Assembly: GCF_046119375.1 (NCBI RefSeq) | Contig: NW_027362761.1 | Span: 1,213,650,001-1,213,714,000, forward strand | Origin: Phyllobates terribilis | Taxonomy: Eukaryota | Direction of reading: 5' to 3' | Length of the DNA stretch: 64,000 bases | Shown here: in pieces, positions 7,961 to 58,557 of the stretch | Layout: every line of letters starts with the position of its first letter | How positions within the stretch are numbered: position 1 is the first letter of the stretch | Made by a program: the position numbers and the translations under genes | The notes under the pieces: generated by a model | Databases searched by the model: none | What the model was told of the DNA's origin: nothing | What the model saw: only the letters and a program-made list of their open reading frames with translations

Positions 7961-8518
7961 ATGTCGTTGACAAATCACCTTTATATTTTCACATTTGTGG
8001 TGGTGGTGGCAGGTCCGATCTATGACGATGTCTGCAAATTACCTGAGCAAGAGAACTTAAAGCAGCTGCATAATGCTTTTGTGAAGGCGAGCTCGGCCGC
8101 CAACTGTTCCACGAATGCTGAGTTAGACGAAGAACAATCCGAGAATGAAGAGATGAGGATGAAATTTTGTAATACGGTCTCAAAGATGAGCGATGACGAA
8201 GTTGGTGTTGTTATACATGAAATTCTGTTATGGATAGAGGACAAACTAAAAAGTCTCTTGTGGTCCGATCGGCAAGAATATAGAAATGTGATGGAACTTT
8301 TGCAAATGCAGATAGATCTCACCACTTCTTGCCTATGAGCAACTAAAGCAAGACTCGTGTAATACAAAACAGCAAAGTACTTGTCTCCACAAGGGGATTT
8401 CGTCAAAGATGGCGAGCAATCGCCTTGCAACTTTAAGGTCGCGAACAGCAAGATAACCAGAAACCTTCTGCTGGCCGAACAAATGATCGCTAATGCATAG
8501 ACAAAGCAAAAGTACTGA
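7961..8518 (+). pseudogene. Type I interferon-like pseudogene (unit 1)
   Basis: Full-length homolog of 23195-23752 with CGA>TGA at 8336-8338, CAA>TAA, and a TAG near the 3' end. Confidence 0.75.
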
Positions 8519-10439
8519 AGAAGGCGAGCGGTGAAGCAGCGCGAGCGTCAAAAACAGGTCTCTGATTTTTGTTGTTCATCTTTATGTTTTTTTTTTAATT
8601 TTCTTTTCTGTTTTTTATTTTGTCAATGAAGCTTCAATAAATTCTGGTGTCAAAGGCGATTACTGTGCGGTGAATGTTTTATTTTGTTTTCACTTTTCTT
8701 TTTCTTTCAAGAGTTTTTCAAACACAACAGAACTGGGATGTGCTCGGCGCATATATATAACATTCGTTCACATACGGTCCTCGTGGAGCCTACGGCTCGG
8801 CCACATTACTCCTTTATAGCGTAAAAGATCTTTTGCTGTTGCTAAAATCATGAACTATATTTTTGCCCTTACATCTTGAGGTGGGTGGCAAGGAGAAAGA
8901 ATGAACAAGCGTGTGCTCTCGTTACCAGAGGAAATCTCTGTCTCCTTCCCATTCAAAACGGTTTTTACAATGTTTTTTTGATTTTCGGTCCCCCCCCACC
9001 ACCCCCTCCGCCTGTTCGTGTTTACAGCCGTTTTACATTTTTCTCATCATCTCAAAGTCTTATTCATGTTAGTTGACATCACGTACAGAGACGGTCGGAT
9101 TATGTCACTTGACTATATATGTATATATTAACAACCTGGGCTAAGCCTAAAACTGCAAAAATGAGACACAAAGGAAGGGTCTTTTTAAAAGTCTGATGAT
9201 GTTCTTGACTCCTAGTGTTGAAAAGTCGAGAAGAAATCTTCCTCTTCTGTCTATATAGAACTGAATAGTGCATTAGATTCTCTCATTTTTTTTTTTCTGA
9301 AAATGTAACCGTGTGTTCTCATGGAGCCGCGTCGTGCCATGGATGATGACCAGGCTCTTGTCAACCGGTGCCGAGCTCTGCTCTTACATGCAGAAATAAC
9401 GGGGATCCTGCAATTTCTCTCGTGCTGCTTCGCTCCTGTCTTGAGATCAGGAGTCCTGTTGAGCTCTTAAATACAGCAGTTTTTTACATTACCACTTGTT
9501 ATAACCTCCAGCCCATAGAGAAATGTGTTTCAGGCGTTTAGTCGGTCTGCTGACTGATCTGCTGAAGTTTTCCATTTCAATCGGTTCCTCAGATCACACA
9601 CGTTTCTGTCACCTGCAGTGGTCGGCGAGTGACTCGGCTCAGCTAGTATCTCGTACAGAGATTGCTGCTCAGGAAGTCTCTCTCAGCATTCACTGGCTGT
9701 GAAGCTTGAAAGGAGGCAGGGAGGAGGCGCGGCAACTGTCTCTTTTTTTTTTTTTTTTTTTTCAGCTTTGATGGAAGGTATAGACTTTCTACTACTGCTC
9801 CTACAGCCGAGGAGTCACCAGCCGCCCAGCACTGAGCGCTTACTACGCAATAGCTCGGTCTGGGCAGACACCTCGGCTGCTGGGCTTCCTATATTTTGAA
9901 GCGACTGCCACAAGAGGGACCTTCTGAGCGAAACTTTCCAATCTACTATAGCTGACACTACAAAGCTTATTGTTTTATTTTATTTTTTAAATTCTTAGGC
10001 TGCCAGCTCATATTCTAAGTAGGTATATCACTTGGAAGGTTGAGTACGTCTCTTGAGATTATTCTCTTTTTTTCATTTATTTTTCTTTATTTATTTATTT
10101 ATTTATTTTTTTTCTCTGCCAGTGATCAAGTTAGATGACTTGATTTTTCTGTAGTGGTGTTTTATATGTTGATATATATAGCGACCGGTGACAGTAGTTC
10201 TCAGGTGCCTTTTTGCTGTCGGTCACAATAACGATCTAGCCGGTTTGTGGTCTTCCACACTCACCGAGTAATCGTGTGCATGGCCATCTAGTGAAAGTTT
10301 AGTCACGGTCTTGATAGGAATCATTTGACTGTCGGGTCTCCGTTACGTTCAATATCCATGCCGGTCATGATCACCCATCTCCACGTAACAGTGTGTGCTA
10401 TGGCGCAATTAGGGAGACAGGCGTCAGCCGAAATAAGGT

Positions 10440-11600
10440 TACTTGGATGGTTATCTCTTGTTTCTTGGCCAGATTCACAAATTAGGAATATTAACATGGG
10501 TCGGTCGTGGAGTGTTTAAAGCATGTGAGGCAGTGTGTTCGACGCCCGCGCTTCCCGACACCGTGCTGTAAATTTTTAAACAGGACTAAGAGAGTTGCAG
10601 CTTTTAGCTGAATGAGAGGCCCCACACATCAGGCGAAAAGAGTAAAGGATCACTGATGCCCTCACCAGTTCACCTCTGTGATTTATTTTTTCTGTGCTGC
10701 GTGCAACATTGTGCTAACAGTTTTTGCTCTATTAAATGATGAAAAACTAGATAAGAACATTTTAAAAAGAGCATTTTTTGATGAGAGTTATGGTCGTTCT
10801 TGGATAAGCCAGAGAGGTCCATGAAGGCTAGGTGAATTGTTATCGTTCGTCTTTTTGGGCAGATTCGCAAATTAGGAATATTAACATGGCTCGATCCTGG
10901 AGTGTTAAAAGCATGTGAGACTGGGTATACAACGTCCGCGCTTCCCGAATCCAAACTGTAAATTTTAAGCAGAATTAAAAGTCGCAACTACAGCTGAACG
11001 AGAGACCCAAATAAGGCAAAAGGAGCAGCATATCACTGACTCCGGCCCTGGTTCAACCCCTGTGACTCTTCTGTGCTGCGTCCAACCTTGACCTAACAGT
11101 TTTTGCTCTATTAAAGGGTGCAAAAAAAAATAGATGAGAACATTTTAAACAGAGCATTTTTGACGAGAGTTACGGTCGTTCTTGGATAAGCCAGAGAGGT
11201 CCACGAAGGCTAGGTGGATGGTTATCTCGTCTTTTTTCGCCAGATTCACAAATTAGGAATATTAACATGGCTCGGTCCAGGAGTGTTAAAAGCGTGTGAG
11301 ACTGGGCATACGACGTCCGTGCTTCCCAAATCTGAACTGTACATTTTTAAACAGAATTAAAAGTTGCAGCTATAGCTGAATGAGAGACCCAAGTAAGGCG
11401 AAAAGGAGCAACATATCACTGACGCCGGCTCTGGTTCAACCCCTGTGACTCTTCTGTGCTGTGTGCAACCTTGACCTAACAGTTTTTGCACTATTAAAGG
11501 GTGCAAAAAAATATATAGACAAGAGTAAATCTAAAAAAAAAAGAGCATTTCTGACAAGAATTACGTCCGTACCTGGATAAGCCACAGGGTTTCACACTGT
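10440..11600 (+). repeat. Diverged ~385-bp repeats upstream of the interferon-like ORF (unit 2)
   Basis: GGATAAGCC at 10802, 11184 and 11575; CAAATTAGGAATATT at 10478, 10868 and 11249. The last partial repeat is the putative promoter/5'UTR of the ORF. The same block is at ~14095-15265 and, one repeat shorter, at ~17740-18525. Confidence 0.85.
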
Positions 11601-11619
11601 GACAGCCTCTTTTAAAGAC

Positions 11620-12177
11620 ATGTCGTTGACAAATCACCTTTATATTTTCACATTTGTGGTGGTGGTGGCAGGTCCGATCTATGACGATGTCTGCAAATTA
11701 CCTGAGCAAGAGAACTTAAAGCAGCTGCATAATGCTTTTGTGAAGGCGAGCTCGGCCGCCAACTGTTCCACGAATGCTGAGTTAGACGAAGAACAATCCG
11801 AGAATGAAGAGATGAGGATGAAATTTTGTAATACGGTCTCAAAGATGAGCGATAACGAAGTTGGTGTTGTTATACATGAAATTCTGTTATGGATAGAGGA
11901 CAAACTAAAAAGTCTCTTGTGGTCCGATCGGCAAGAATATAGAAATGTGATGGAACTTTTGCAAATGCAGATAGATCTCACCACTTCTTGCCTACGAGCA
12001 ACTAAAGCAAGACTCGTGTAATACAAAACAGCAAAGTACTTGTCTCCACAAGGGGATTTCGTCAAAGACGGCGAGCAATCGCCTTGCAACTTTAAGGTCG
12101 CGAACAGCAAGATAACCAGAAACCTTCTGCTAGCCGAACAAATGATCGCTAATGCAGAGACAAAGCAAAAGTACTGA
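11620..12177 (+). pseudogene. Type I interferon-like pseudogene (unit 2)
   Basis: Full-length homolog with a premature TAA at 12019-12021 (CAA in intact copies; shared with unit 1). Confidence 0.75.
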
Positions 12178-15100
12178 AGAAGGCGAGCGGTGAAGCAGCG
12201 CGGGCGTCAAAAACAGGTCTCTGATTTTTGTTGTTCATCTTTATGTTTTTTTTTTAATTTTCTTTTCTGTTTTTTATTTTGTCAATGAAGCTTCAATAAA
12301 TTCTGGTGTCAAAGGCGATTACTGTGCGGTGAATGTTTTATTTTGTTTTCACTTTTCTTTTTCTTTCAAGAGTTTTTCAAACACAACAGAACTGGGATGT
12401 GCTCGGCGCATATATATAACATTCGTTCACATACGGTCCTCGTGGAGCCTACGGCTCGGCCACATTACTCCTTTATAGCGTAAAAGATCTTTTGCTGTTG
12501 CTAAAATCATGAACTATATTTTGCCCTTACATCTTGAGGTGGGTGGCAAGGAGAAAGAATGAACAAGCGTGTGCTCTCGTTACCAGAGGAAATCTCTGTC
12601 TCCTTCCCATTCAAAACTGTTTTTTACAATGTTTTTTTGATTTTCGGTCCCCCCCCACCACCCCCTCCGCCTGTTCGTGTTTACAGCCGTTTTACATTTT
12701 TCTCATCATCTCAAAGTCTTATTCATGTTAGTTGACATCACGTACAGAGACGGTCGGATTATGTCACTTGACTATATATGTATATATTAACAACCTGGGT
12801 TAAGCCTAAAACTGAAAAAATGAGACACAAAGGAAGGGTCTTTTTAAAAGTCTGATGATGTTCTTGACTCCTAGTGTTGAAAAGTCGAGAAGAAATCTTC
12901 CTCTTCTGTCTATATAGAACTGAAAAGTGCATTAGATTCTCTCATTTTTTTTTTTCTGAAAATGTAACCGTGTGTTCTCATGGAGCCGCGTCGTGCCATG
13001 GATGATGACCAGGCTCCTGTCAACCGGTGCCGAGCTCTGCTCTTACATGCAGAAATAACGGGGATCCTACAATTTCTCTCGTGCTGCTTCGCTCCTGTCT
13101 TGAGATCAGGAGTCCTGTTGAGCTCTTAAATACAGCAGTTTTTTTACATTACCACTTGTTATAACCTCCAGCCCATAGAGAAATGTGTTTCAGGCGTTTA
13201 GTCGGTCTGCTGACTGATCTGCTGAAGTTTTCCATTTCAATCGGTTCCTCAGATCACACACGTTTCTGTCACCAGCCGTGGCCGGCGAGTGACTCGGCTC
13301 AGCTAGTATCTCGTACAGAGATTGCTGCTCAGGAAGTCTCTCTCAGCATTCACTGGCTGTGAAGCTTGAAAGGAGGCAGGGAGGAGGCGCGGCAACTGTC
13401 TCTTTTTTTTTTTTTTTTTCAGCTTTTGATGGAAGGTATAGACTTTCTACTACTACTCCTACAGCCGAGGAGTCACCAGCCGCCCAGCACTGAGCGCTTA
13501 CTACACAATAGCTCGGTCTGGGCAGACACCTCGGCTGCTGGGCTTCCTAGATTTTGAAGCGACTGCCACAAGAGGGACCTTCTGAGCGACACGTTCCAAT
13601 CTACTATAGCTGACACTACAAAGCTTATTGTTTTATTTATTTTTAAATTCTTAGGCTGCCAGCTCATATTCTAAGTAGGTATATCATTGGGAAGGTTGAG
13701 TACGTCTCTTGAGATTTTTTTTTCTTTTATTCATTCATTTATTTTTATTTTTTTCTCTGCCAGTGATCAAGTTGGATGGCTTGATTTTTTTTTTTTTTTT
13801 TTTGTGTAGTGGTGATTTTATATGTTGATTTATATAGCGACCGGTGACAGTAGTTCTCAGGTGCCTTTTTGCTGTCGGTCACAATAACGATCTAGACGGT
13901 TTGTGGTCTTCCACACTCCCCGAGTAATCGTGTGCATGGCCATCTAGTGTAAGTTTAGTCACGGTCTTGATAGGAATCATTTGACTGTCGGGTCACCGTT
14001 ACGTTCAATATCTATGCCGCTCATGATCACCCAACTCCACGTAACAGTGTGTGCTATGGCACCATTAGAGAGACAGGCGTCAGCCGAAATAAGGTTACTT
14101 GGATGGTTATCTCTTGTTTCTTGGCCAGATTCACAAATTAGGAATATTAACATGGGTCGGTCGTGGAGTGTTTAAAGCATGTGAGGCAGTGTGTTCGACG
14201 CCCGCGCTTCCCGACACCGTGCTGTAAATTTTTAAACAGGACTAAGAGAGTTGCAGCTTTTAGCTGAATGAGAGGCCCCACACATCAGGTGAAAAGAGTA
14301 AAGGATCACTGATGCCCTCACCAGTCCACCCCTGTGATTTTTTTTTTTTCTGTGCTGCGTGCAACATTGTGCTAACAGTTTTTGCTCTATTAAATGATGA
14401 AAAACTACATGAGAACATTTTAAAAAGAGCATTTTTGACGAGAGTTATGGTCGTTCTTGGATAAGCCAGAGAGGTCCATGAAGGCTTGGTGAATTGTTAT
14501 CGCTCGTCTTTTTGGCCAGATTCACAAATTAGGAATATTAACATGGCTCGATCCTGGAGTGTTAAAAGCATGTGAGACTGGGTATATGAAATCCGCGCTT
14601 CCCGAATCCAAACTGTAAATTTTTAAGCAGAATTAAAAGTCGCAACTAAAGCTGAACGAGAGACCCAAATAAGGTAAAAGGAGCAGCATATCACTGACAC
14701 CGGCCCTGGTTCAACCCCTGTGACTCTTCTGTGCTGCGTGCAACCTTGACCTAACAGTTTTTGCACTATTAAAGGGTGCAAAAATAGATGAGAACATTTT
14801 AAAAAGAGCATTTTTGACGAGAGTTACGGTCGTTCTTGGATAAGCCAGAGAGGTCCACGAAGGCTAGGTGGATGGTTATCTCATCTTTTTTTTTTTACCA
14901 GATTCACAAATTAGGAATATTAACATGGCTCGGTCCAGGAGTGTTAAAAGCATGTGAGACTGGGCATACGACGTCCGTGCTTCCCAAATCTGAACTGTAC
15001 ATTTTAAACAGAATTAAAAGTTGCAGCTATAGCTGAATGAGAGACCAAAGTAAGGCAAAAAGGAGCAACATATCACTGACGCCGGCTCTGGTTCAACCCC

Positions 15101-15284
15101 CTGTGACTCTTCTGTGCTGTGTGCAACCTTGACCTAACAGTTTTTTGCACTATTAAAGGGTGTAAAAAAATATATATAGATAGGAATAAATCTAAAAAAA
15201 AAAAAAAGAGCATTTCTGAAGAGAATTACGTCCGTACCTGGATAAGCCACAGGGTTTCACACTGTGACAGCCTCTTTTAAAGAC

Positions 15285-15843
15285 ATTTCGCTGACAAATC
15301 ACCTTTACATTTTCACATTTGTGGTGGTGGTGGCAGGTCCCATCTATGACGGTGTCTGCAAATTACCTGAGCAAGAGAACTTAAAGCAGCTGCATAATGC
15401 TTTTTGTGAAGGCGAGCTTGGCCGCCAACTGTTCCACAAATGCTGTTTTAGACGAAGAACAATCCGAGAATGAAGAGATGAGGATGAAATTTTTTAATAC
15501 GGTCTCAAAGATGAGCGATGACGAAGTTGGTGTTGTTATACATGAATTTCTGTTATGGATAGAGGACAAACTAAAAAGTCTCATGTGGTCCGATCGGCAA
15601 GAATATAGAAATGTGATGGAACTTTTGCAAATGCAGATAGATCTCACGACTTCTTGCCTACGAGCAACTAAAACAAAACTCGTGCAACACAAAACAGCAA
15701 AGTACTTGTCTCCACAAGGGGATTTCGTCAAAGACGGCGAGCAATCGCCTTGCACCTTTAAGGTCGCGTGTAGCAAGATAACCAGAATCCTTCTGCTGGC
15801 CGAACAAATGATCGCTAATGCAGAGACAAAGCAAAAGTACTGA
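15285..15843 (+). pseudogene. Type I interferon-like pseudogene (unit 3)
   Basis: Start codon ATG>ATT at 15285 and a +1 T in GCTTTTTGTG. The native C-terminus is otherwise present. Confidence 0.75.
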
Positions 15844-18545
15844 AGAAGGCGAGCGGTGAAGCAGCGCGGGCGTCAAAAACAGGTCTCTGATTTTGTTGTT
15901 CATCTTTATGTTTTTAATTTTCTTTTTTCTGTATTTATTTTGTCAATGAAGCTTCAATAAATTCTGGTGTCCAAGGCGATTACTGTGCGGTGAATGTTTT
16001 ATTTTGTTTTTACTTTTCTTTCGAGAGTTTTCAAACATAACAGAACTAGGATGTGCGCGGCGCATATATATAACATTCGTTCACATACGGTCCTCGTGGA
16101 GCCTACGGCTCGGCCACATTACTCCTTTATAGCGTAAAAGATCTTTTGCTGTTGCTAAAATCATGAACTATATTTTTGCCCTTACATCTTGAGGTGGGTG
16201 GCAAGGAGAAAGAATGAACAAGCGTGTGCTCTCATTACCAGAGGAAATCTCTGTCTCCTTCCCATTCAAAACTGTTTTTTACAATGTTTTTTACGGTCAC
16301 CCCCCCCCCACCCGCCTGTTTGTGTTTACAGCCATTTTACATTTCTCATCATCTCAAAGTCTTTTTCGTGTTAGTTGACATCACGTACAGAGACGGTCGG
16401 TTTACGCCACTTGACTATATATGTATATATTAACAACTTGGACTAAGCCTAAAACTGCAAAAATGAGACACAAAGGAAGGGTCTTTTTAAAAGTCTGATG
16501 ATGTTCTTGACTCCTAGTGTTCAAAAGTCGAGAAGAAATCTTCCTCTTCTGTCTATATAGAACTGAAAAGTGCATTAGATTCTCTCTTTTTTTTTTTTTC
16601 TGAAAATGTAACCGTGTGTTCTCATGGAGCCGCGTCGTGCCATGGATGATGACCAGGCTCTTGTCAACCGGGGCCGAGCTCTGCTCTTACATGCAGAAAT
16701 AACGGGGATCCTGCAATTTCTCTCGTGCTGCTTCGCTCCTGTCTTGAGATCAGGAGTCCTGTTGAGCTCTTAAATACAGCAGTTTTTTACATTACCACTT
16801 GTTATAACCTCCAGCCCATAGAGAAATGTGTTTCAGGCGTTTAGTCGGTCTGCTGACTGATCTGCTGAAGTTTTCCATTTCAATCGGTTCCTCAGATCAC
16901 ACACGTTTCTGTCACCAGCCGTGGCCGGCGAGTGACTCGGCTCAGCTAGTATCTCGTACAGAGATTGCTGCTCAGGAAGTCTCTCTCAGCATTCACTGGC
17001 TGTGAAGCTTGAAAGGAGGCAGGGAGGAGGCGCGGCAACTGTCACTTTTTTTTTTTTTTTTTTTTCAGCTTTTGATGGAAGGTACAGACTTTCTACTACT
17101 ACTCCTACAGCCGAGGAGTCACCAGCCGCCCAGCACTGAGCGCTTACTACGCAATAGCTCGGTCTGGGCAGACACCTCGGCTGCTGGGCTTCCTAGATTT
17201 TGAAGCGACTGCCACAAGAGGGACCTTCTGAGCGAAACTTTCCAATCTACTATAGCTGACACTACAAAGCTTATTGTTTTATTTATTTTTAAATTCTTAG
17301 GCTGCCAGCTCATATTCTAAGTAGGTATATCATTGGGAAGGTTGAGTACGTCTCTTGAGATTTTTTTTTTCTTTTATTCATTCATTTATTTTTTTTTTTT
17401 CTCTGCCAGTGATCAAGTTGGATGGCTTGATTTTTTTTTTTTTTTTTGTGTAGTGGTGATTTTATATGTTGATTTATATAGCGACCGGTGACAGTAGTTC
17501 TCAGGTGCCTTTTTGCTGTCGGTCACAATAACGATCTAGCCGGTTTGTGGTCTTCCACACTCCCCGAGTAATCGTGTGCATGGCCATCTAGTGTAAGTTT
17601 AGTCACGGTCTTGATAGGAATCATTTGACTGTCGGGTCACCGTTACGTTCAATATCTATGCCGCTCATGATCACCCAACTCCACGTAACAGTGTGTGCTA
17701 TGGCGCCATTAGAGAGACAGGCGTCAGCCGAAATAAGGTTACTTGGATGGTTATCTCTTGTTTCTTGGCCAGATTCACAAATTAGGAATATTAACATGGG
17801 TCGGTCGTGGAGTGTTTAAAGCATGTGAGGCAGTGTGTTCGACGCCCGCGCTTCCCGACACCGTGCTGTAAATTTTTAAACAGGACTAAGAGAGTTGCAG
17901 CTTTTAGCTGAATGAGAGGCCCCACACATCAGGTGAAAAGAGTAAAGGATCACTGATGCCCTCACCAGTCCACCCCTGTGATTTTTTTTTTTTCTGTGCT
18001 GCGTGCAACATTGTGCTAACAGTTTTTGCTCTATTAAATGATGAAAAACTACATGAGAACATTTTAAAAAGAGCATTTTTGACGAGAGTTATGGTCGTTC
18101 TTGGATAAGCCAGAGAGGTCCATGAAGGCTTGGTGGATGGTTATCTCGTCTTTTTTTTACCAGATTCACAAATTAGGAATATTAACATGGCTCGGTCCAG
18201 GAGTGTTAAAAGCATGTGAGACTGGGCATACGACGTCCGTGCTTCCCAAATCTGAACTGTACATTTTAAACAGAATAAAAAGTTGCAGCTATAGCTGAAT
18301 GAGAGACCAAAGTAAGGCAAAAAGGAGCAACATATCACTGACGCCGGCTCTGGTTCAACCCCCTGTGACTCTTCTGTGCTGTGTGCAACCTTGACCTAAC
18401 AGTTTTTTGCACTATTAAAGGGTGTAAAAAAATATATATAGATAAGAATAAATCTAAAAAAAAAAAAAGAGCATTTCTGAAGAGAATTACGTCCGTACCT
18501 GGATAAGCCACAGGGTTTCACACTGTGACAGCCTCTTTTAAAGAC

Positions 18546-19065
18546 ATGTCGTTGGCAAATCACCTTTACATTTTCACATTTGTGGTGGTGGTGGCAGGTC
18601 CGATCTATGACGGTGTCTGCAAATTACCTGAGCAAGAGAACTTATACCAGCTGCATAATGCTTTTGTGAAGGCGAGCTCGGCCGCCAACTGTTTCGTAAA
18701 TGCTGTGTTAGCCGAAGAACAATCCGAGAATGAAGAGATGAGGATGACATTTTTTTAATACGGTCTCAAAGATGAGCGATGACGAAGTTGGTGTTGTTAT
18801 ACATGAATTTCTGTTATGGATAGAGGACAAACTAAAAAGTCTCTTGTGGTCCGATCGGCAAGAATATAGAAATATGATGGAACTTTTGCAAATGCAGATA
18901 GATCGCACGACTTCTTGCCTACGAGCAACTAAAACAAGACTCGTGCAATACAAAACAGCTAAGTACTTGTCTCCACAAGGGGATTTCGTCAAAGATGGCG
19001 AGCAATCGCCTTGCACCTTTAAGGTTCAACCCCCTGTGACTCTTCTGTGCTGTGTGCAACCTTGA
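18546..19065 (+). pseudogene. Truncated, frameshifted interferon-like copy
   Basis: T7 instead of T6 in the A(C/A)ATTTTTTAAT tract splits the ORF (track ORFs 18525-18758 and 18772-19065). Confidence 0.7.
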
Positions 19066-19209
19066 CCTAACAGTTTTTGCGCTATTAAAGGGTGCAAAAA
19101 AAATATATAGACCCGAGTAAATCTAAATAAAAGAGCATTTCTGATGAAAATTACGTCCGTACCTGGATAAGCCACAGGGTTTCACACTGTGACAGCCTCT
19201 TTTAAAGAC

Positions 19210-19728: not shown

Positions 19729-19872
19729 CCTAACAGTTTTTGCACTACTAAAGGGTGCAAAAAATATATATAGACAAGAGTAAATCTAAATAAAAGAGCA
19801 TTTCTGACGAGAATTACGTCCGTACCTGGATAAGCCACAGGGTTTCACACTGTGACAGCCTCTTTTAAAGAC

Positions 19873-20391: not shown

Positions 20392-20535
20392 CCTAACAGT
20401 TTTTCAACTATTAAAGAGTGCAGAAACTATATATAGACAAGAGTAAATCTAAATAAAAGAGCATTTCTGACGAAAATTACGTCCGTACCTGAATAAGCCA
20501 CAGGGTTTCACACTGTGACAGCCTCTTTTAAAGAC

Positions 20536-21078: not shown

Positions 21079-21198
21079 AGGGTGAAAAAATATATATAGA
21101 CAAGAGTAAATCTAAATAAAAGAGCATTTCTGACGAAAATTACGTCCGTACCTGGATAAGCCACAGGGTTTCACACTGTGACAGCCTCTTTTAAAGAC

Positions 21199-23049: not shown

Positions 23050-23088
23050 ACTAACAGTTTTTGCGTTATTAAAGGGTGCAAAAAAAAA

Positions 23089-26090: not shown

Positions 26091-26099
26091 CTAATAGAT

Positions 26100-46204: not shown

Positions 46205-46213
46205 CTAATAGAT

Positions 46214-47260: not shown

Positions 47261-47426
47261 TATGTATCTTTTGTTTGCAGATTGTAACTTTTGCTTTTGT
47301 CAGACTAATTCTTCTCGTCAGACATCTTTTGGTTCGTTCTTCGCTGTAAATATGTGTCACTAATGTCCTGAAGGCAGAGAATGACTTGTGTAGATGAGAA
47401 GTAAACGATATGAGCCGGGCGCAGCA

Positions 47427-47511
47427 CCCAGCATGTACAGCGTAGTGGTAGTGCTCCTGCCCTACATGCCGGTGACACGGGTTCGAATCCTGAGCTGTAC
47501 TTATTGCTGGG
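47427..47511 (+). ncRNA. tRNA-like element (HOR3)
   Basis: One C>T change in the variable region. Confidence 0.55.
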
Positions 47512-48819
47512 AGCTGAGAGAATGAACGACATCTACATATGTACAACAAATCATCGCTGTTAATACCTGACTTTAACTTATTATTAAGTTTGACGTCTTT
47601 GAGCTTCTGTGTTTCCAAGTTTGCCGGAAAAACTAAAAACGAGCAAGAAAAATGTCTGAACCAAAAGAAACTCAAGACAAACCTTGTTTGCTGTGCACCA
47701 TCAAGTGTGAATGTCTGCTCTGGAGAGTGATATGTGGCTCTGCTGGATAGTATATAAGGGCCAATATGGAGCCCAGTCATCAGCAGAAGCCGTACAGTCC
47801 TGGGCTGTATGGACCGTATGTTCTGACTTCAATATCTATTGGAAACTGCGGTGAAAAGAACGATAAAGCTTCTGCCTTTCGTGGAAACATTGAGGATTTG
47901 AGTCCTGGCGTTGCTGCGTTAAGCACAGAGACCATACTGAGCCCATAGTGATAGCACAGAGCACACCGGTACTGGTAACGATCGCTCCGATCACTGGGAG
48001 ACACAACTTTCCATCAATATCATCTCTGACTTCTCTCAGATTGTAAAGCCAAAAAATTGACATAAGGAAACAAAGACAAAGTCTGACATGACATTCGCCA
48101 AAATACTGTTCATTGTGGTATCTGTGACCGGTCTGGAGCCGGACGACAGCACAGGACTAAATTTTAAACAGGAATAAGAGGGCTGCAGCTTTTAGCTGAA
48201 TGAGAGGTCACACATCAGGCGAAAGGAGTAAAGGATCACTGATGCCGTCACCAGTTCATCCCTGTGATTTCTTTCTTCTGTGCTGCGTGCAACATTGTTC
48301 CAACAGTTTTTGCTCTGTTAAATGATGCAAAACTACATGAGAACATTTTAAAAAGAGCATTTTTTTACGAGAGTTACGGTCGTTCTTGGATAAGCCAGAG
48401 AGGTCCACGAAGGCTAGGTGGATGGTTATCTTGTCTTTTTGGCGAGATTCACAAATTAGGAATATTAACATAGCTCGGTCCAGGAGTGTTAAAAGCGTGT
48501 GAGACTGGGCATACGACATCCATATTTCCCAAGTCTGAACTGTACATTGTAAACTGAATTAAAAGTTGCAGCTATAGCTCAATGAGAGACCCAAGTAAGG
48601 CGAAAAGGAGCAACATATCACTGACGCCGGCTCTGGTTCAACCCCTGTGACTCTTCTGTGCTGTGTGCAACCTTGACCTAACAGTTTTTGCACTATTAAA
48701 GGGTGCAAAAAAATATATAGACAAGAGTAAATCTAAAAAAAGAGCATTTTCTGATAAGAATTACGTCCGTACCTGGATAAGCCACAGGGTTTCACACTGT
48801 GACAGCCTCTTTTAAAGAC

Positions 48820-51330
48820 ATGTCGATGGCAAATCACCTTTACATTTTCACATTTGTGTGGTGGTGGCAGGTCCGATCTATGACGGTGTCTGCAAATTAT
48901 CTGAGCAAGAGAACTTATAGCAGCTGCATAATGCTTTTGTGAAGGCGAGCTCGGCCGCCAACTGTTTCGTAAATGCTGTGTTAGCCGAAGAACAATCCGA
49001 GAATGAAGAGATGAGGATGAAATTTTTTTAATACGGTCTCAAAGATGAGCGATGACGAAGTTGGTGTTGTTATACATGAATTTCTGTTATGGATAAAGGA
49101 CAAACTAAAAAGTCTCTTGTGGTCCGATCGGCAAGAATATAGAAATATGATGGAACTTTTGCAAATGCAGATAGATCGCGTGACTTCTTGCCTACGAGCA
49201 ACTAAAACAAGACTATTGCAATACAAAACAGCAAAGTACTTGTCTCCACAAGGGGATTTCGTCAAAGACGGCGAGCAATCGCCTTGCACCTTTAAGGTTC
49301 AACCCCCTGTGACTCTTCTGTGCTGTGTGCAACCTTGACCTAACAGTTTTTGCACTATTAAAGGGTGCAAAAAATATATATAGACAAGAGTAAATCTAAA
49401 TAAAAGAGCATTTCTGACGAAAAATACGTCCGTACCTGGATAAGCCACAGGGTTTCACACTGTGACAGCCTCTTTTAAAGACATGTCGTTGGCAAATCAC
49501 CTTTACATTTTCACATTTGTGGTGATGGTGGCAGGTCCGATCTATGACGGTGTCTGCAAATTACCTGAGCAAGAGATCTTGAAGCAGCTGCATAATGCTT
49601 TTGTGAAGGCGAGCTCGGCCGCCAACTGTTTCGTAAATGCTGTGTTAGCCGAAGAACAATCCGAGAATGAAGAGATGAGGATGACATTTTTTTAATACGG
49701 TCTCAAAGATGAGCGATGACGAAGTTGGTGTTGTTATACATGAATTTCTGTTATGGATAGAGGACAAACTAAAAAGTCTCTTGTGGTCCGATCGGCAAGA
49801 ATATAGAAATATGATGGAACTTTTTGCAAATGCAGATAGATCGCACGACTTCTTGCCTACGAGCAACTAAAACAAGACTATTGCAATACAAAACAGCAAA
49901 GTACTTGTCTCCACAAGGGGATTTCGTCAAAGACGGAGAGCAATCGCCTTGCACCTTTAAGGTTCAACCCCCTGTGACTCTTCTGTGCTATGTGCAACCT
50001 TGACCTAACAGTTTTTGCACTATTAAAGGGTGCAAAAAAATATATATAGACAAGAGTAAATCTAAATTAAAAGAGCATTTCTGACGAAAATTACGTCCGT
50101 ACCTGGATAAGCCACAGGGTTTCACACTGTGACAGCCTCTTTTAAAGACATGTCGTTGGCAAATCACCTTTACATTTTCACATTTGTGGTGGTGGTGGCA
50201 GGTCCGATCTATGACGGTGTCTGCAAATTATCTGAGCAAGAGAACTTAAAGCAGCTGCATAATGCTTTTGTGAAGGCGAGCTCGGCCGCCAACTGTTTCG
50301 TAAATGCTGTGTTAGCCGAAGAACAATCCGAGAATGAAGAGATGAGGATGAAATTTTTTAATACGGTCTCAAAGATGAGCGATGACGAAGTTGGTGTTGT
50401 TATACATGAATTTCTGTTATTATTGAGGACAAACTAAAAAGTCCATTGTGGTCCGATCGGCAAGAATATAGAAATATGATGGAACTTTTGCAAATGCAGA
50501 TAGATCTCGCGACTTCTTGCCTACGAGCAACTAAAACAAGACTCGTGCAATACAAAACAGCAAAGTACTTGTCTCCACAAGGGGATTTCGTCAAAGACGG
50601 CGAGCAATCGCCTTGCACCTTTAAGGTTCAACCCCCTGTGACTCTTCTGTGCTGTGTGCAACCTTGACCTAACAGTTTTTGCACTATTAAAGGGTGAAAA
50701 AATATATATAGACAAGAGTAAATCTAAATAAAAGAGCATTTCTGACGAAAAATACGTCCGTACCTGGATAAGCAACAGGGTTTCACACTGTGACAGCCTC
50801 TTTTAAAGACATGTCGTTGGCAAATCACCTTTACATTTTCACATTTGTGGTGATGGTGGCAGGTCCGATCTATGACGGTGTCTGCAAATTACCTGAGCAA
50901 GAGATCTTGAAGCAGCTGCATAATGCTTTTGTGAAGGCGAGCTCGGCCGCCAACTGTTTCGTAAATGCTGTGTTAGCCGAAGAACAATCCGAGAATGAAG
51001 AGATGAGGATGAAATTTTTTTAATACGGTCTCAAAGATGAGCGATGACGAAGTTGGTGTTGTTATACATGAATTTCTGTTATGGATAGAGGACAAACTAA
51101 AAAGTCTCTTGTGGTCCGATCGGCAAGAATATAGAAATATGATGGAACTTTTGCAAATGCAGATAGATCGCGCGACTTCTTGCCTACGAGCAACTAAAAC
51201 AAGACTCGTGCAATACAAAACAGCAAAGTACTTGTCTCCACAAGGGGATTTCGTCAAAGATGGCGAGCAATCGCCTTGCACCTTTAAGGTTCAACCCCCT
51301 GTGACTCTTCTGTGCTGTGTGCAACCTTGA
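48820..51330 (+). pseudogene. Four disabled truncated interferon-like copies
   Basis: Same recurrent frameshifts as arrays 2-3. Confidence 0.7.
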
Positions 51331-51478
51331 CCTAACAGTTTTTGCGCTATTAAAGGGTGCAAAAAAAATATATATATAGACAAGAGTAGATCTAAATAAA
51401 AGAGCATTTCTGACGAGAATTACGTCCGTGCCTGGATAAGCCACAGGGTTTCACACTGTGACAGCCTCTTTTAAAGAC

Positions 51479-52036
51479 ATGTCGTTGGCAAATCACCTTT
51501 ACATTTTCACATTTGTGGTGATGGTGGCAGGTCCCATCTATGACGGTGTCTGCAAATTACCTGAGCAAGAGAACTTAAAGCAGCTGCATAATGCTTTTGT
51601 GAAGGCGATCTCGGCCGCCAACTGTTTCGTAAATGCTGTGTTAGCCGAAGAACAATCCGAGAATGAAGAGATGAGGATGAAATTTTTTAATACGGTCTCA
51701 AAGATGAGCGATGACGAAGTTGGTGTTGTTATACATGAATTTCTGTTATGGATAGAGGACAAACTAAAAAGTCTCTTGTGGTCCGATCGGCAAGAATATA
51801 GAAATATGATGGAACTTTTGCAAATGCAGATAGATCGCACGACTTCTTGCTTACGAGCAACTAAAACAAGACTCATGCAATACAAAACAGCAAAGTACTT
51901 GTCTCCACAAGGGGATTTCGTCAAAGACGGCGAGCAATCGCCTTGCACCTTTAAAGTCGCGTACAGCAAGATAATCAGAATCCTTCTGCTGGCCGAACAA
52001 ATGATCGCTAATGCAGAGACAAAGCAAAAGTACTGA
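51479..52036 (+). CDS. Intact type I interferon-like protein (185 aa)
   Basis: One leader change (VVMVA). AATAAA at 52153. Confidence 0.72.
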   Translation: MSLANHLYIFTFVVMVAGPIYDGVCKLPEQENLKQLHNAFVKAISAANCFVNAVLAEEQSENEEMRMKFFNTVSKMSDDEVGVVIHEFLLWIEDKLKSLLWSDRQEYRNMMELLQMQIDRTTSCLRATKTRLMQYKTAKYLSPQGDFVKDGEQSPCTFKVAYSKIIRILLLAEQMIANAETKQKY

Positions 52037-52517: not shown

Positions 52518-53925
52518 GAGTCTCAGTACATTCGCCTTTCTCCTCAGGGTTTAGCACACAGCTCCATCTACCCTGTCAGATGATTGTCCTCTGTATCTCA
52601 GTACATTCGGCAGTTCTCAGTGTTCAGCACACAGATGTCTCTGCCCTGTCTGCTGCACAGTCATCTGATTTTCATGTGTGCCTCAGTTCATCCGCCTTTC
52701 TCCTCAATATTAAGCACACAGCTTGTTGTGTCCTGTCAGCTGAAAGTTCCTGTGTGTCTCACACATTGGCAGTTCTCCTCAATCTGTAGCACACACCTCC
52801 GATGATTGTCCTGTGTGTCTCACACATCCGCGGTTCTCCTCAGTGTTTAGCACACAGCTCCTTCTGCCCTGTCAGATGATTGTCCTGTGTGTCTTAGTAC
52901 ATCCGCGGTTCTCCTCAGTGTTTAGCACACAGCTCCTTCTGCCCTGTCAGATTATTGTCCTGTGTGTCTTAGTACATCCGCGGTTCTCCTCATTGTTTAG
53001 CACACAGCTCCTTCTGCCCTGTCAGATGATTGTCCTGTGTGTCTCACACATCCGCGGTTCTCCTCAGTGTTTAGCACACAGCTCCTTCTGCCCTGTCAGA
53101 TTATTGTCCTGTGTGTCTTAGTACATCCGCGGTTCTCCTCAGGGTTAAGCACACAGCTCCTTCTGCCCTGTCAGATGATTGTCCTGTGTGTCTTAGTACA
53201 TCCGCGGTTCTCCTCATTGTTTAGCACACAGCTCCTTCTGCCCTGTCAGATTATTGTCCTGTGTGTCTTAGTACATCCGCGGTTCTCCTCAGTGTTTAGC
53301 ACACAGCTCCTTCTGCCCTGTCAGATGATTGTCCTGTGTGTCTTTGTACTTCCGCGGATCTCCTCATTGTTTAGCACACAGCTCCTTCTTCCCTGTCTGC
53401 TGATACATACTGTGTGTCTCAGTAGATCTGCAGATCTCCTAAGTGTTTACCACACGGCTCCTTTTGTTCTGTCTGCTGATATTTCCTGTTTCGCCACAGC
53501 CCAACTATCAGTATTTGGTTAGTATTTTTTCTCACTAGTCGGAGACAAAACCAGGAGTGGAGCTCCTTCTGCCCTGTCAGCAGCTTGTACTCTCTTTCAG
53601 TGCTTAACACAGCTCATTTTCCCCTGTCAGATGATTGTCCTGTGGGTCTCACACATCGTCATTCTCATCAGGGTTTAGCAAATGGCTCCTTCTGTTCTGT
53701 CAGATGATTGTTCTGTTTTCCTCAGTACATCGGCAGTTCTCTTCAGGGTTTACCACACAGCTCCTTCTGCCCTGTCAGATGATTGTCCTGTGTGTCTCAC
53801 ACATCGGCAGTGCTCCTCAGGGTTTACCACACAGCTCCTTCTGCCCTGTCAGCAGCTTGTACTCTCTTTCAGTACATTGGCAGTTTTCGTCAACGTTTCG
53901 CACAAAGTTTCTTCCGCCCAGTCAG
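52518..53925. repeat. 75/74-bp minisatellite (HOR4)
   Basis: Same monomer as 24234-26090. Confidence 0.95.
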
Positions 53926-54803: not shown

Positions 54804-55028
54804 TAGAATCCCTCTGTGTGTAATGACTCTATATAATAGATCCCTCTGTGTGTAATGACTCTATATAATAGATCCCTCTGTGTGTAATGACTCTATATAA
54901 TAGATCCCTCTGTGTGTAATGACTCTATATAATAGATCCCTCTGTGTGTAATGACTCTATATAATAGATCCCTCTGTGTGTAATGACTCTATATAATAGA
55001 TCCCTCTGTTTGTAATGACTCTATATAA
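54804..55028. repeat. 32-bp VNTR in the Tc1 TIR (7 units)
   Basis: Units at 54804, 54837, 54869, 54901, 54933, 54965 and 54997. Confidence 0.95.
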
Positions 55029-55275
55029 TATATGAGCTTCACTTTTGGTATTGAAGAACTGAAATAAATTAACTTTTTGATGATATTCTAATTTTGTGAG
55101 ATGCACTTGTATGTATCTTTTGTTTGCAGATTGTAACTTTTGCTTTTGTCAGACTAATTCTTCTCGTCAGACATCTTTTGGTTCGTTCTTCGCTGTAAAT
55201 ATGTGTCACTAATGTCCTGAAGGCAGAGAATGACTTGTGTAGATGAGAAGTAAACGATATGAGCCGGGCGCAGCA

Positions 55276-55360
55276 CCCAGCATGTACAGCGTAGTGGTAG
55301 TGCTCCTGCCCTACATGCCGGTGACACGGGTTCGAATCCTGAGCTGTACTTATTGCTGGG
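55276..55360 (+). ncRNA. tRNA-like element (HOR4)
   Basis: Same as HOR3. Confidence 0.55.
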
Positions 55361-56671
55361 AGCTGAGAGAATGAACGACATCTACATATGTACAACAAAT
55401 CATCGCTGTTAATACCTGACTTTAACTTATTATTAAGTTTGACGTCTTTGAACTTCTGTGTTTCCAAGTTTGCCGGAAAAACTAAAAACGAGCAAGAAAA
55501 ATGTCTGAACCAAAAGAAGCTCAAGACAAACCTTGTTTGCTGTGCACCATCAAGTGTGAATGTCTGCTCTGGAGAGTGATATGTGGCTCTGCTGGATAGT
55601 ATATAAGGGCCAATATGGAGCCCAGTCATCAGCAGAAGCCGTACAGTCCTGGGCTGTATGGACCGTATGTTCTGACTTCAATATCTATTGGAAACTGCGG
55701 TGAAAAGAACGATAAAGCTTCTGCCTTTCGTGGAAACATTGAGGATTTGAGTCCTGGCGTTGCTGCGTTAAGCACAGAGACCATACTGAGCCCATAGTGA
55801 TAGCACAGAGCACACCGGTACTGGTAACGATCGCTCCGATCACTGGGAGACACAACTTTCCATCAATATCATCTCTGACTTCTCTCAGATTGTAAAGCCA
55901 AAAAATTGACATAAGGAAACAAAGACAAAGTCTGACATGACATTCGCCAAAATACTGTTCATTGTGGTATCTGTGACCGGTCTGGAGCCGGACGACAGCA
56001 CAGGACTAAATTTTAAACAGGAATAAGAGGGCTGCAGCTTTTAGCTGAATGAGAGGTCACACATCAGGCGAAAGGAGTAAAGGATCACTGATGCCGTCAC
56101 CAGTTCATCCCTGTGATTTCTTTCTTCTGTGCTGCGTGCAACATTGTTCCAACAGTTTTTGCTCTGTTAAATGATGCAAAACTACATGAGAACATTTTAA
56201 AAAGAGCATTTTTTTACGAGAGTTACGGTCGTTCTTGGATAAGCCAGAGAGGTCCACGAAGGCTAGGTGGATGGTTATCTTGTCTTTTTGGCGAGATTCA
56301 CAAATTAGGAATATTAACATAGCTCGGTCCAGGAGTGTTAAAAGCGTGTGAGACTGGGCATACGACATCCATATTTCCCAAGTCTGAACTGTACATTGTA
56401 AACTGAATTAAAAGTTGCAGCTATAGCTCAATGAGAGACCCAAGTAAGGCGAAAAGGAGCAACATATCACTGACGCCGGCTCTGGTTCAACCCCTGTGAC
56501 TCTTCTGTGCTGTGTGCAACCTTGACCTAACAGTTTTTGCACTATTAAAGGGTGCAAAAAAATATATAGACAAGAGTAAATCTAAAAAAAAAAAGAGCAT
56601 TTCTGACGAAAAATACGTCCGTACCTGGATAAGCCACAGGGTTTCACACTGTGACAGCCTCTTTTAAAGAC

Positions 56672-57856
56672 ATGTCGTTGGCAAATCACCTTTACATTTT
56701 CACATTTTTGGTGATGGTGGCAGGTCCGATCTATGACGGTGTCTGCAAATTACCTGAGCAAGAGATCTTGAAGCAGCTGCATAATGCTTTTGTGAAGGCG
56801 AGCTCGGCCGCCAACTGTTTCGTAAATGCTGTGTTAGCCGAAGAACAATCCGAGAATGAAGAGATGAGGATGACATTTTTTTAATACGGTCTCAAAGATG
56901 AGCGATGACGAAGTTGGTGTTGTTATACATGAATTTCTGTTATGGATAGAGGACAAACTAAAAAGTCTCTTGTGGTCCGATCGGCAAGAATATAGAAATA
57001 TGATGGAACTTTTTGCAAATGCAGATAGATCGCACGACTTCTTGCCTACGAGCAACTAAAACAAGACTATTGCAATACAAAACAGCAAAGTACTTGTCTC
57101 CACAAGGGGATTTCGTCAAAGACGGAGAGCAATCGCCTTGCACCTTTAAGGTTCAACCCCCTGTGACTCTTCTGTGCTGTGTGCAACCTTGACCTAACAG
57201 TTTTTGCGTTATTAAAGGGTGCAAAAAAATATATATAGACAAGAGTAAATCTAAATTAAAAGAGCATTTCTGACGAAAATTACGTCCGTACCTGGATAAG
57301 CCACAGGGTTTCACACTGTGACAGCCTCTTTTAAAGACATGTCGTTGGCAAATCACCTTTACATTTTCACATTTGTGGTGGTGGTGGCAGGTCCGATCTA
57401 TGACGGTGTCTGCAAATTATCTGAGCAAGAGAACTTAAAGCAGCTGCATAATGCTTTTGTGAAGGCGAGCTCGGCCGCCAACTGTTTCGTAAATGCTGTG
57501 TTAGCCGAAGAACAATCCGAGAATGAAGAGATGAGGATGAAATTTTTTAATACGGTCTCAAAGATGAGCGATGACGAAGTTGGTGTTGTTATACATGAAT
57601 TTCTGTTATTATTGAGGACAAACTAAAAAGTCCATTGTGGTCCGATCGGCAAGAATATAGAAATATGATGGAACTTTTGCAAATGCAGATAGATCTCGCG
57701 ACTTCTTGCCTACGAGCAACTAAAACAAGACTCGTGCAATACAAAACAGCAAAGTACTTGTCTCCACAAGGGGATTTCGTCAAAGACGGCGAGCAATCGC
57801 CTTGCACCTTTAAGGTTCAACCCCCTGTGACTCTTCTGTGCTGTGTGCAACCTTGA
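56672..57856 (+). pseudogene. Two disabled truncated interferon-like copies
   Basis: T7 plus T5 tracts in the first copy; TTATTATTGAGG frameshift in the second. Confidence 0.7.
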
Positions 57857-57999
57857 CCTAACAGTTTTTGCACTATTAAAGGGTGAAAAAATATATATAG
57901 ACAAGAGTAGATCTAAATAAAAGAGCATTTCTAACGAGAATTACGTCCGTGCCTGGATAAGCCACAGGGTTTCACACTGTGACAGCCTCTTTTAAAGAC

Positions 58000-58557
58000 A
58001 TGTCGTTGGCAAATCACCTTTACATTTTCACATTTGTGGTGGTGGTGGCAGGTCCCATCTATGACGGTGTCTGCAAATTACCTGAGCAAGAGAACTTAAA
58101 GCAGCTGCATAATGCTTTTGTGAAGGCGATCTCGGCCGCCAACTGTTTCGTAAATGCTGTGTTAGCCGAAGAACAATCCGAGAATGAAGAGATGAGGATG
58201 AAATTTTTTAATACGGTCTCAAAGATGAGCGATGACGAAGTTGGTGTTGTTATACATGAATTTCTGTTATGGATAGAGGACAAACTAAAAAGTCTCTTGT
58301 GGTCCGATCGGCAAGAATATAGAAATATGATGGAACTTTTGCAAATGCAGATAGATCGCACGACTTCTTGCTTACGAGCAACTAAAACAAGACTCATGCA
58401 ATACAAAACAGCAAAGTACTTGTCTCCACAAGGGGATTTCGTCAAAGACGGCGAGCAATCGCCTTGCACCTTTAAAGTCGCGTACAACAAGATAATCAGA
58501 ATCCTTCTGCTGGCCGAACAAATGATCGCTAATGCAGAGACAAAGCAAAAGTACTGA
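58000..58557 (+). CDS. Intact type I interferon-like protein (185 aa)
   Basis: One change (AYNK). AATAAA at 58674. Confidence 0.72.
   Translation: MSLANHLYIFTFVVVVAGPIYDGVCKLPEQENLKQLHNAFVKAISAANCFVNAVLAEEQSENEEMRMKFFNTVSKMSDDEVGVVIHEFLLWIEDKLKSLLWSDRQEYRNMMELLQMQIDRTTSCLRATKTRLMQYKTAKYLSPQGDFVKDGEQSPCTFKVAYNKIIRILLLAEQMIANAETKQKY

Follow-up and report, generated by a model that had tools for sequence, protein, structure and literature searches.

The 64,000-nucleotide stretch of the Phyllobates terribilis genome analyzed here (hereafter the window) probably carries a lineage-specific and highly divergent type I interferon-like gene, consisting of a single exon, which evolves as a tandem-repeat system. 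Its repeat structure, the single junction shared by its truncated copies and the mosaic genealogies of its segments can be read directly from the assembled DNA, and its homology to interferon is established through one intermediate protein by sequence comparison.

Copy Number and Repeat Organization

The copied ORF is a single exon of 558 bp, uninterrupted from ATG to stop, that encodes 185 amino acids. A BLAST search of the window with its representative at 23195–23752 found exactly 36 copies within 51 kb, all on the plus strand, to which all coordinates below refer. Eight copies are of full extent, starting at 7961, 11620, 15285, 23195, 33722, 43457, 51479, and 58000, and the remaining 28 all end at CDS nucleotide 476. 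Upon translation, five copies are intact (185 amino acids), six are open and truncated to 172 or 180 amino acids (19210, 19873, 20536, 21199, 22531, and 41463), and 25 are disabled, including three of the full-extent ones. The other four intact ORFs differ from the 23195 copy by 2, 0, 1, and 1 residues, respectively. Arrays of 8, 9, 8, 5, and 3 copies account for 33 of the total, and the other three are found in 3.66-kb units. The initial annotation had given the same copy, state and array counts and an upper limit of two residue changes among the intact proteins, and all of these were reproduced.

The three 3.66-kb units (7961–18545) are spaced by 3659 and 3665 bp and have one full-extent, disabled CDS each (7961–8518, 11620–12177, and 15285–15843), accompanied by a 460-bp 3′ flank, a 1.46-kb unit-specific segment and 2.8 copies of a 383-bp repeat. 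These CDSs are 95–96% identical to the intact one and have received premature stops (125 and 133 amino acids) or the loss of the ATG together with a frameshift. Part of a further 3.66-kb unit, U0, is cut by the window start (1–1488; 97.8% identical to 9179–10669), and a 5.5-kb insertion separates it from the remainder of U0 at 7003–7960. This remainder is composed of 383-bp upstream repeats (period 382 at 7032–7865 according to TRF) and the proximal promoter-like region of the first full-extent copy, U1, and is 99.7% identical to 10661–11619. The presence of U0 at the window start indicates that the array continues leftward.

The five arrays consist of head-to-tail units with a period of 663–667 bp. 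Array A (18546–23752) has seven 3′-truncated units, five of them open, and a terminal intact gene at 23195–23752. Eight disabled truncated units precede the intact gene (33722–34279) of array B (28410–34279), and seven truncated units, of which that at 41463 is open, precede that of array C (38801–44014; gene at 43457–44014). Arrays D (48820–52036) and E (56672–58557) are shorter, with four and two disabled units in front of the intact genes at 51479–52036 and 58000–58557, respectively. The truncation of the inner units lies within the CDS, which leaves the last copy of an array as the only one able to encode the complete protein: by construction, it alone has the C-terminal helix and stop codon and is followed by the 3′ flank (23753–24227 in array A, with AATAAA at 23869), which is present only behind full-extent copies.

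The spacers contain 75-bp and 32-bp minisatellites, and 383-bp repeats are found in the upstream region. The 75-bp minisatellite lies at 24228–26090 in spacer A and at 35043–36094, 44779–46131, 52801–53852, and 59036–61875 in the others, and its copy number varies from 14 to 38 between repeats. The 1.74-kb distal spacer (26671–28409) closes with the 383-bp repeats that lie upstream of the next array and with that array's promoter-like region; homologues of the spacer at 37066–38800, 47081–48819, 54930–56671, and 62847–64000 are 98.5–100% identical between the higher-order repeats (HORs). Since the last of these is where the distal spacer belonging to repeat E begins (99.0% identical to 26671–27824), a further array is expected beyond the window, and the locus thus continues past both window ends. 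Spacer and left-flank ORFs matched no Pfam family, and no Rfam match was obtained within the window.

Measured from the array starts, the higher-order periods are 9873, 10391, 10019, and 7849 bp. Indeed, units at equivalent positions in different HORs are closer to each other than neighboring units are: D2 is 100% identical to C2, and D3 and D4 are 99.8% identical to C3 and C4, vs. about 96–98% between neighbors. The initial annotation had proposed three nested levels with a HOR of 6.5–10.5 kb. The HOR and the nesting of repeats stand, while the range given was slightly too wide at its low end, the 3.66-kb units adjoin the 663-bp arrays rather than being nested in them, and there are more levels than three, namely the 383-bp upstream repeat, the multi-unit blocks and the 75-bp and 32-bp minisatellites.

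Founding Junction and Proposed Origin

One junction, at which CDS nucleotide 476 is joined to position −187, is common to all 28 inner copies, and when the junction sequence was set against the intact CDS and against upstream sequence that is not duplicated, 1–2 nucleotides of microhomology were revealed. That the junction is shared by every inner copy points to a single illegitimate duplication, probably expanded later by unequal exchange. In the route that we propose, illegitimate recombination would have joined CDS nucleotide 476 to position −187 in the upstream region of the same gene, yielding a founding 663-bp unit of a promoter-like region and the first 85% of the CDS, and unequal homologous exchange would have expanded this unit into arrays. 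The array, 3′ flank, minisatellites and 1.74-kb spacer might then have been duplicated together as an 8–10-kb HOR, giving a set that adjoins a presumably older set of 3.66-kb one-gene units. Continuing exchange and gene conversion would duplicate or delete blocks of units and hold the complete genes close to identity. Of the marks of retroposition, neither a poly(A) remnant nor flanking direct repeats can be seen.

Recent and Ongoing Turnover

The amplification had been described as very recent and the turnover as satellite-like, and both descriptions are borne out. For the copy-number polymorphism between individuals that had also been proposed, the Logan contigs of other runs supplied no evidence, as they give no copy number. 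In four of the five arrays, the terminal gene and its 3′ flank differ by only 1–2 substitutions per 1028 bp, and several units are 100% identical to each other (C3 and C6, C4 and C7, B2 and B7, C2 and D2). Array C holds a duplicated block of three units, C3–C5 matching C6–C8, and array D corresponds to array C minus this block. Furthermore, adjacent segments have discordant genealogies. Between A and C, the gene with its 3′ flank differs at 1 of 1028 sites and the spacer at 18 of 1738 (Fisher p = 0.003), and the opposite pattern is found between B and C (7 of 1028 vs. 2 of 1735; p = 0.016). Together with the identical blocks, this discordance indicates that gene conversion and unequal crossing-over are still under way. 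A sharp conversion boundary within the 200 bp upstream of the terminal ATG, where the difference is 6%, was considered and rejected, as much of this difference is variation in the length of A/TA runs at the TATA box; for this reason, the mosaic argument rests on the comparison of the gene and 3′ flank with the distal spacer.

Relationship to Type I Interferons

The 185-residue protein has a predicted signal peptide and four cysteines, at positions 25, 49, 124, and 156. A phmmer search against 1.84 billion representative proteins detected a sole relative, designated P0001 (E = 1.9e-11, 40% identity over residues 79–181), and no frog interferon at E of 0.001 or better; word-indexed searches of 5.8 billion clustered proteins, queried first by the one sequence and next by an alignment, found nothing beyond P0001. 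P0001 matches the Interferon alpha/beta family, PF00143, with 30.4 bits (gathering cut-off, 26.8; E = 5.2e-7) over profile positions 48–156 of 160, and the same match had been precomputed independently. Thus, the claim of the initial annotation that this is an immune gene holds transitively, from the ORF to P0001 and from P0001 to PF00143. On its contig, P0001 has a 131-amino-acid ORF upstream.

In PDB, a direct search with the window protein gave no match, and phmmer with P0001 alone gave no interferon. With a joint profile of the window proteins and P0001, all eight PDB matches are interferon-alpha chains, at E values of 0.13–0.65 that are individually non-significant. IFN-alpha has a four-cysteine pattern, C1–C98 and C29–C138, and a C-terminal SPCAWE motif. 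The joint-profile alignment places C124 of the window protein at C98 of IFN-alpha2 and its SPC156 at SPC138 of the CAWE motif, where the window protein has SPCTFK in place of SPCAWE; P0001 shares both aligned cysteines and the SPC motif. For the two N-terminal cysteines, the correspondence is one of spacing alone; the four cysteines together may fit a type I interferon. Type I interferons have the five-helix class II cytokine fold; AlphaFold gave poor models with five to six helices (pLDDT 57.5 without an alignment and 50.9 with a five-row one), and Foldseek, run against PDB, VIA-align wide and AFDB Swiss-Prot, retrieved nothing but generic helical bundles, which were not used as evidence either way. 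We infer that the five complete genes would make a secreted cytokine signaling through the type I interferon receptor.

Alternative Interpretations

The ORF could belong to another class of secreted helical proteins, for instance the IL-6/G-CSF-like long-chain cytokines, or be an unrelated orphan. Neither the 185-residue protein nor its C-terminal 110 residues match PF00143 in Pfam even at E ≤ 10, and the weak neighbors of the full protein in the ESM Atlas are clusters of IL-12a, G-CSF, IL-11, leptin, and LIF (scores 0.86–0.89). However, these scores are under the reliability line of the tool itself, and the neighbors vanish without the signal peptide: the mature part retrieves unrelated helical proteins and no interferons, and P0001 retrieves nothing. 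As the only real homologue exceeds the gathering threshold of Interferon alpha/beta, and the PDB profile matches are unanimous with the cysteines in register, we regard another class as rather unlikely. A doubt of a different kind is whether the HOR copies or identical blocks arose in assembly, through false duplication of haplotypes or the erroneous expansion of a shorter array. Over 2360 bp surrounding the terminal gene, arrays C and D differ by three substitutions, and their main difference is the three-unit block, which is 100% identical to its neighbor; the independent runs were examined as Logan contigs, which give no copy number. On the other hand, runs X1 and X2, from two independent studies, each yielded a 697-nucleotide contig composed of one 666-bp period plus 31 nucleotides, opened at two different positions, 22950 and 22977; that of X1 spans the junction 23006|23007 by 57 nucleotides, and the X2 contig by only 30 on its left side. 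Such self-closure after a single period, seen in independent studies, means that the assembly did not create the tandem unit. Run X4 covers the unit at 3.2–4.4 times the depth of the part specific to terminal copies (about 830–1160 vs. 262), in agreement with the ratio of 36:8 in the window. Moreover, units have their own substitutions and lesions (2–4% divergence), spacers A, D, and B/C/E differ at 0.6–1.4% of sites, and minisatellite lengths also differ, which is not expected of artefactual copies. An artefact of this kind is therefore improbable.

With the repeat structure taken as real, it is possible, if somewhat doubtful, that the locus is a neutral, decaying satellite derived from an amplified interferon-like retrogene, in which no copy is functional and the five intact ones were homogenized too recently to have decayed. 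The genome is described as rich in repeats, at about 88% (PMC12208295). Most copies are disabled, and lesions common to different arrays indicate that dead units were themselves amplified. Changes private to the open copies are 13 non-synonymous and 8 synonymous (p = 0.13 vs. neutral), so that no purifying selection is detected, and open copies are not different from disabled ones, at 42:17. A regular-expression scan of the 187-bp proximal region detected neither an ISRE nor paired IRF sites nor an NF-kB motif, and isolated IRF half-sites are all that the spacer contains. Among the available runs, none is recorded as RNA; small runs marked “RNA?” resemble low-coverage DNA, and are read as such because their contigs pass the poly(A) signal and cross unit junctions. 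The near-identity of the terminal genes reaches into the non-coding 3′ flank, which suggests conversion rather than protein-level selection. Against this stand the complete copy kept intact in all five arrays, where most inner copies are disabled, and the retention of both aligned cysteines and the SPC motif in P0001 at 40% identity, which implies protein-level constraint somewhere in the family. The TATA-like box (23089–23095, about 100 nucleotides upstream of the ATG in every unit, followed by AATAAA at 23111), the ATG, the signal-peptide-like start and the AATAAA are also all in place. As far as the evidence now goes, the inner copies are neutral passengers. Conversely, the architecture itself might be functional, either as a copy-number “accordion”, the image used in the initial annotation, for an antiviral cytokine, or through open 172-residue truncated proteins or their RNAs that modulate the full-length cytokine. 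The adaptive version is not sustained by the substitution pattern, which cannot be told from neutral, and we consider a functional architecture quite unlikely.

Implications

Lineage-specific bursts of intronless interferon genes are already known in frogs; by the time they are observed, the copies have usually diverged so far that the way in which the burst came about can no longer be seen. If the locus is an interferon-like gene evolving as a tandem-repeat system, the amplification has been caught in progress, with its founding junction, truncated arrays capped by complete genes, recent block duplications and conversion, and would give a concrete case of how a cytokine gene becomes satellite DNA, or the reverse. 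Amphibians are under heavy pressure from ranaviruses, and at this locus it becomes possible to ask whether a rapidly changing copy number of an antiviral gene is of adaptive value to them. If the architecture were functional, with each array stacking promoter-bearing units before one complete interferon-like gene, selection from frog viruses would keep the locus in flux. The locus would then represent a counterpart of D4Z4/DUX4 among immune genes and a novel mode of evolution for a cytokine locus. Furthermore, this lineage is too divergent for standard annotation by Pfam and sequence search, so that interferon repertoires of large amphibian genomes may be under-counted.

Comparison with Known Systems

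As in the intronless type I interferons of Xenopus (IFNX) and Nanorana parkeri, the gene has a single exon and encodes a predicted secreted helical protein of about 185 residues that may fit the four-cysteine pattern, and like the frog interferons, which have expanded independently in different species, it shows lineage-specific tandem expansion with pseudogenes (PMC4928184; PMC7016992). However, it is far more divergent than amphibian intronless interferons, with CTFK instead of CAWE, and for Xenopus, 24–37 interferon genes over about 0.5 Mb are described rather than 663-bp arrays of truncated copies (PMC4928184; PMC7016992). Mammalian IFN-alpha/omega clusters, for example that of the pig (PMC4221479), are similar in being tandem multigene families with pseudogenes and concerted evolution by gene conversion.

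The copies in these mammalian clusters are full-length genes several kb or more apart, among which arrays of truncated copies are not known. In human D4Z4/DUX4 at 4q35, each 3.3-kb tandem unit has a full intronless, retrogene-type ORF, array length shifts by unequal exchange, and a usable 3′ end with a poly(A) signal is confined to the distal copy. The P. terribilis locus resembles it in having an ORF inside the tandem unit and a usable 3′ end in the distal copy alone, whereas its inner units are cut inside the CDS and its arrays are themselves repeated as 8–10-kb units. The nested periodicities, block duplication and deletion, and homogenization by unequal crossing-over and conversion are like those of alpha satellite HORs; unlike the non-coding centromeric monomers of alpha satellite, however, the unit here is derived from a gene and carries a promoter-like region and most of an ORF.

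Organization of the Repeat Locus

BLAST of the open reading frame (ORF) at 23195-23752 (558 bp, 185 amino acids) against the window finds 36 copies, every one on the plus strand: the full 558 bp are spanned by eight of them, and the remaining 28 end at nucleotide 476. When translated from each ATG, five copies give intact 185-amino-acid ORFs, at 23195, 33722, 43457, 51479, and 58000, the last four proteins differing from the first by 2, 0, 1, and 1 residues, respectively. Six others are open but truncated (172 or 180 amino acids), and 25 of the 36 are disabled by premature stops, frameshifts, or loss of the start codon. The total of 36 and its split into 5, 6, and 25 are exactly those that the initial annotation had given.

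Three copies (starts at 7961, 11620, and 15285, plus strand, by BLAST) lie in 3.66-kb units, and to their right follow five arrays (A to E) with 8, 9, 8, 5, and 3 copies at a period of 663-667 bp. The distances from array start to array start are 9873, 10391, 10019, and 7849 bp. The array copy numbers proposed earlier hold, and the lower bound of 6.5 kb proposed for the long period is loose, the measured minimum being 7849 bp; "nested" is also a loose word for the 3.66-kb units, because they sit beside the arrays. Each higher-order repeat opens with an array of 663-bp units and its one complete gene. Next come 460 bp of 3′ flank, which has an AATAAA at 23869, then the 75-bp minisatellite and a short segment, in some repeats containing a 32-bp minisatellite. 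A 1.74-kb spacer closes the repeat, and its 3′ end consists of the 383-bp repeat holding the proximal upstream region, in about 1.7 copies. The gene, the 3′ flank, and the 383-bp repeats are common to the 3.66-kb units and the higher-order repeats, while the former have a distinct 1.46-kb middle segment where the latter have minisatellites. The locus is truncated by the window at both ends: a fourth 3.66-kb unit, interrupted by a 5.5-kb insertion, occupies 1-1488 and 7003-7960, and 62847-64000 is the first part of the next spacer.

The 75-bp minisatellite is found behind each array (24228-26090, 35043-36094, 44779-46131, 52801-53852, and 59036-61875), and its GC and AT skews are both strongly negative. 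Between higher-order repeats that are otherwise near-identical, it varies from 14 to 38 copies and provides a second and independent indicator of instability. Furthermore, the upstream region is tandemly repeated with a 383-bp period at 7032-7865, 10444-11524, and 14103-15169 (2.2-2.8 copies, 83-88% matches). Here a promoter-like segment is duplicated without any coding sequence, in a round of tandem duplication that seems to predate the 663-bp unit. The insertion in the leftmost 3.66-kb unit (1489-7002) is a foldback element in which nearly all of the sequence is nested inverted repeats; the arms reach 609 nt and are 96-99% complementary. It has an 8-bp target-site duplication, CTCACCAG, on either side and the termini TAGTG...CTCTA, and it resembles a non-autonomous hAT-type transposon; no Pfam family was detected in its ORFs.

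Origin and Homogenization of the Tandem Units

One junction is common to all 28 inner copies: nucleotide 476 of the coding sequence is joined to what is, in the unduplicated copies, the sequence 187 bp upstream of the ATG, and the two parental sequences overlap there by 1-2 bases. Such a shared junction argues that the 663-bp unit would have been made by a single illegitimate recombination, and its multiplication would then have proceeded by homologous unequal exchange. This founding event would explain why each inner unit has a promoter-like region (a TATA-like box at -106 and AATAAA at -84) plus 85% of the coding sequence, and why the last copy of each array alone retains the 3′ flank along with the final helix. 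Past the junction, the inner ORF runs into upstream sequence and acquires the tail VQPPVTLLCCVQP. An AATAAA at 23111-23116, with an equivalent in every 663-bp unit, is situated about 60 nt past the stop of the truncated ORF and just 3′ of the next TATA-like box, so that, judged from these motifs, each unit could in principle be a self-contained mini-gene.

Logan contigs from four sequencing runs were aligned to 22900-24227. Two runs from different studies, X1 and X2, each yielded one 697-nt contig, equal to one 666-bp period plus 31 nt and cut at differing points (22950 and 22977). Contigs of this form are what a de Bruijn assembler puts out for a tandem repeat closing on itself. The X1 contig spans the junction 23006|23007 by 57 nt. 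In the large run X4, the word depth is about 830-1160 over the shared unit vs. 262 over the terminal-specific part, a ratio of 3.2-4.4, to be compared with the copy ratio of 36:8 (4.5) in the window. The self-closing contigs, the bridged junction, and the depth ratio therefore establish that the tandem unit level, as distinct from the higher-order level, is no assembly artifact. A run labeled as another organism, X17, contains a 260-nt piece of the coding sequence with two differences. At 23821 and 23936 the X4 contigs diverge into unrelated sequence, with an increase in depth at about 23935-23979; part of the 3′ flank (a short stretch at 23821-23936) is therefore present elsewhere in the genome too, perhaps as a fragment of a dispersed repeat.

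Pairwise identities computed among all units revealed that relationships between arrays are position-specific. For example, the second units of arrays C and D are 100% identical, C3 and C4 match D3 and D4 at 99.8%, and C8 vs. D5 and C3 vs. E2 are each at 99.7%. Within array C, the block C3-C4-C5 recurs as C6-C7-C8 (100%, 100%, and 99.4%), and array D corresponds to array C minus that three-unit block; in array B, B7 is 100% identical to B2. Genealogies also differ from segment to segment. Over the terminal gene and its 3′ flank, A, C, D, and E differ from one another by 1-2 substitutions per 1028 bp and B by 7-8, while in the distal spacers B, C, and E differ by 0-2 per 1155, with D 7-9 and A 12-14 away. 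A and C differ at 1/1028 in gene plus flank vs. 18/1738 in the spacer (Fisher p = 0.003), and B and C in the opposite direction, at 7/1028 vs. 2/1735 (p = 0.016). Segment mosaics of this kind are the hallmark of repeats that undergo gene conversion and exchange unequally with one another. Because the near-identity of the terminal genes runs on through the non-coding flank, it comes from homogenization and not from protein-level selection.

A Probable Divergent Interferon-Like Gene

The 185-amino-acid protein has no match in Pfam, in PDB, or in a word-indexed collection of 5.8 billion proteins. Exhaustive phmmer comparison with 1.84 billion representatives gave one real relative, P0001 (E 1.9e-11, 40% identity over residues 79-181), a 139-amino-acid protein from a 2.3-kb (2267 bp) Logan contig. 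P0001 matches PF00143 (Interferon alpha/beta) at 30.4 bits, above the curated threshold of 26.8, with E 5.2e-7 and coverage of positions 48-156 in a profile of 160, and the same assignment had also been precomputed independently. When P0001 and the window proteins were combined into one profile, 8/8 PDB hits were to interferon-alpha, each alone non-significant (E 0.13-0.65); in these alignments, C124 falls opposite C98, and S-P-C156 opposite S-P-C138 of the CAWE motif. Cysteines 25, 49, 124, and 156 are spaced roughly as in four-cysteine interferons, the N-terminus looks signal-peptide-like by eye, and the gene is a single exon. At about 42%, the base GC of the window agrees with the value reported for the draft assembly, 42.26% (PMC12208295). 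In frogs, type I interferons lacking introns coexist with intron-containing ones, and the former have expanded independently in every species examined (PMC4928184; PMC7016992). Probably, the ORF is a highly divergent type I interferon-like gene of the frog intronless kind. The P0001 contig also has a 131-amino-acid ORF that ends 136 bp upstream of P0001; the two could be halves of one interferon-like gene, this ORF the N-terminal one, with a short intron or a frameshift between them.

Functional Gene or Neutral Satellite

A serious rival reading, conceivable though somewhat unlikely, is that the locus is a neutral gene-derived satellite in which the complete copies are merely young and no copy is functional. 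Private substitutions bear on it: they number 13 non-synonymous to 8 synonymous in open copies and 42 to 17, plus 7 stops, in disabled ones, and neither set departs significantly from the neutral expectation of about 75:25. The ISRE, paired IRF site, and NF-kB consensus are absent from the proximal 187 bp. None of the matching runs has RNA on record, and the small runs guessed as RNA behave like low-coverage DNA. Structure prediction for the protein did not succeed (pLDDT 57.5 and 50.9), and fold and ESM searches were uninformative. The gene family is of a known kind, that of the intronless interferons of amphibians, whose expansion is lineage-specific and in tandem.

The repeat structure is solid and is instructive on gene family turnover, and its biological meaning would rest on experiments. 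In it, 3′-truncated copies follow one another at a 663-bp period, each array is capped by its only complete gene, and the arrays in turn recur in 8-10-kb units homogenized by conversion. To our knowledge, no interferon locus has this arrangement, and a comparable one at any interferon locus was not found in the literature searched. The nearest analogue is the human D4Z4/DUX4 macrosatellite, in which a usable 3′ end is present in the distal copy only.
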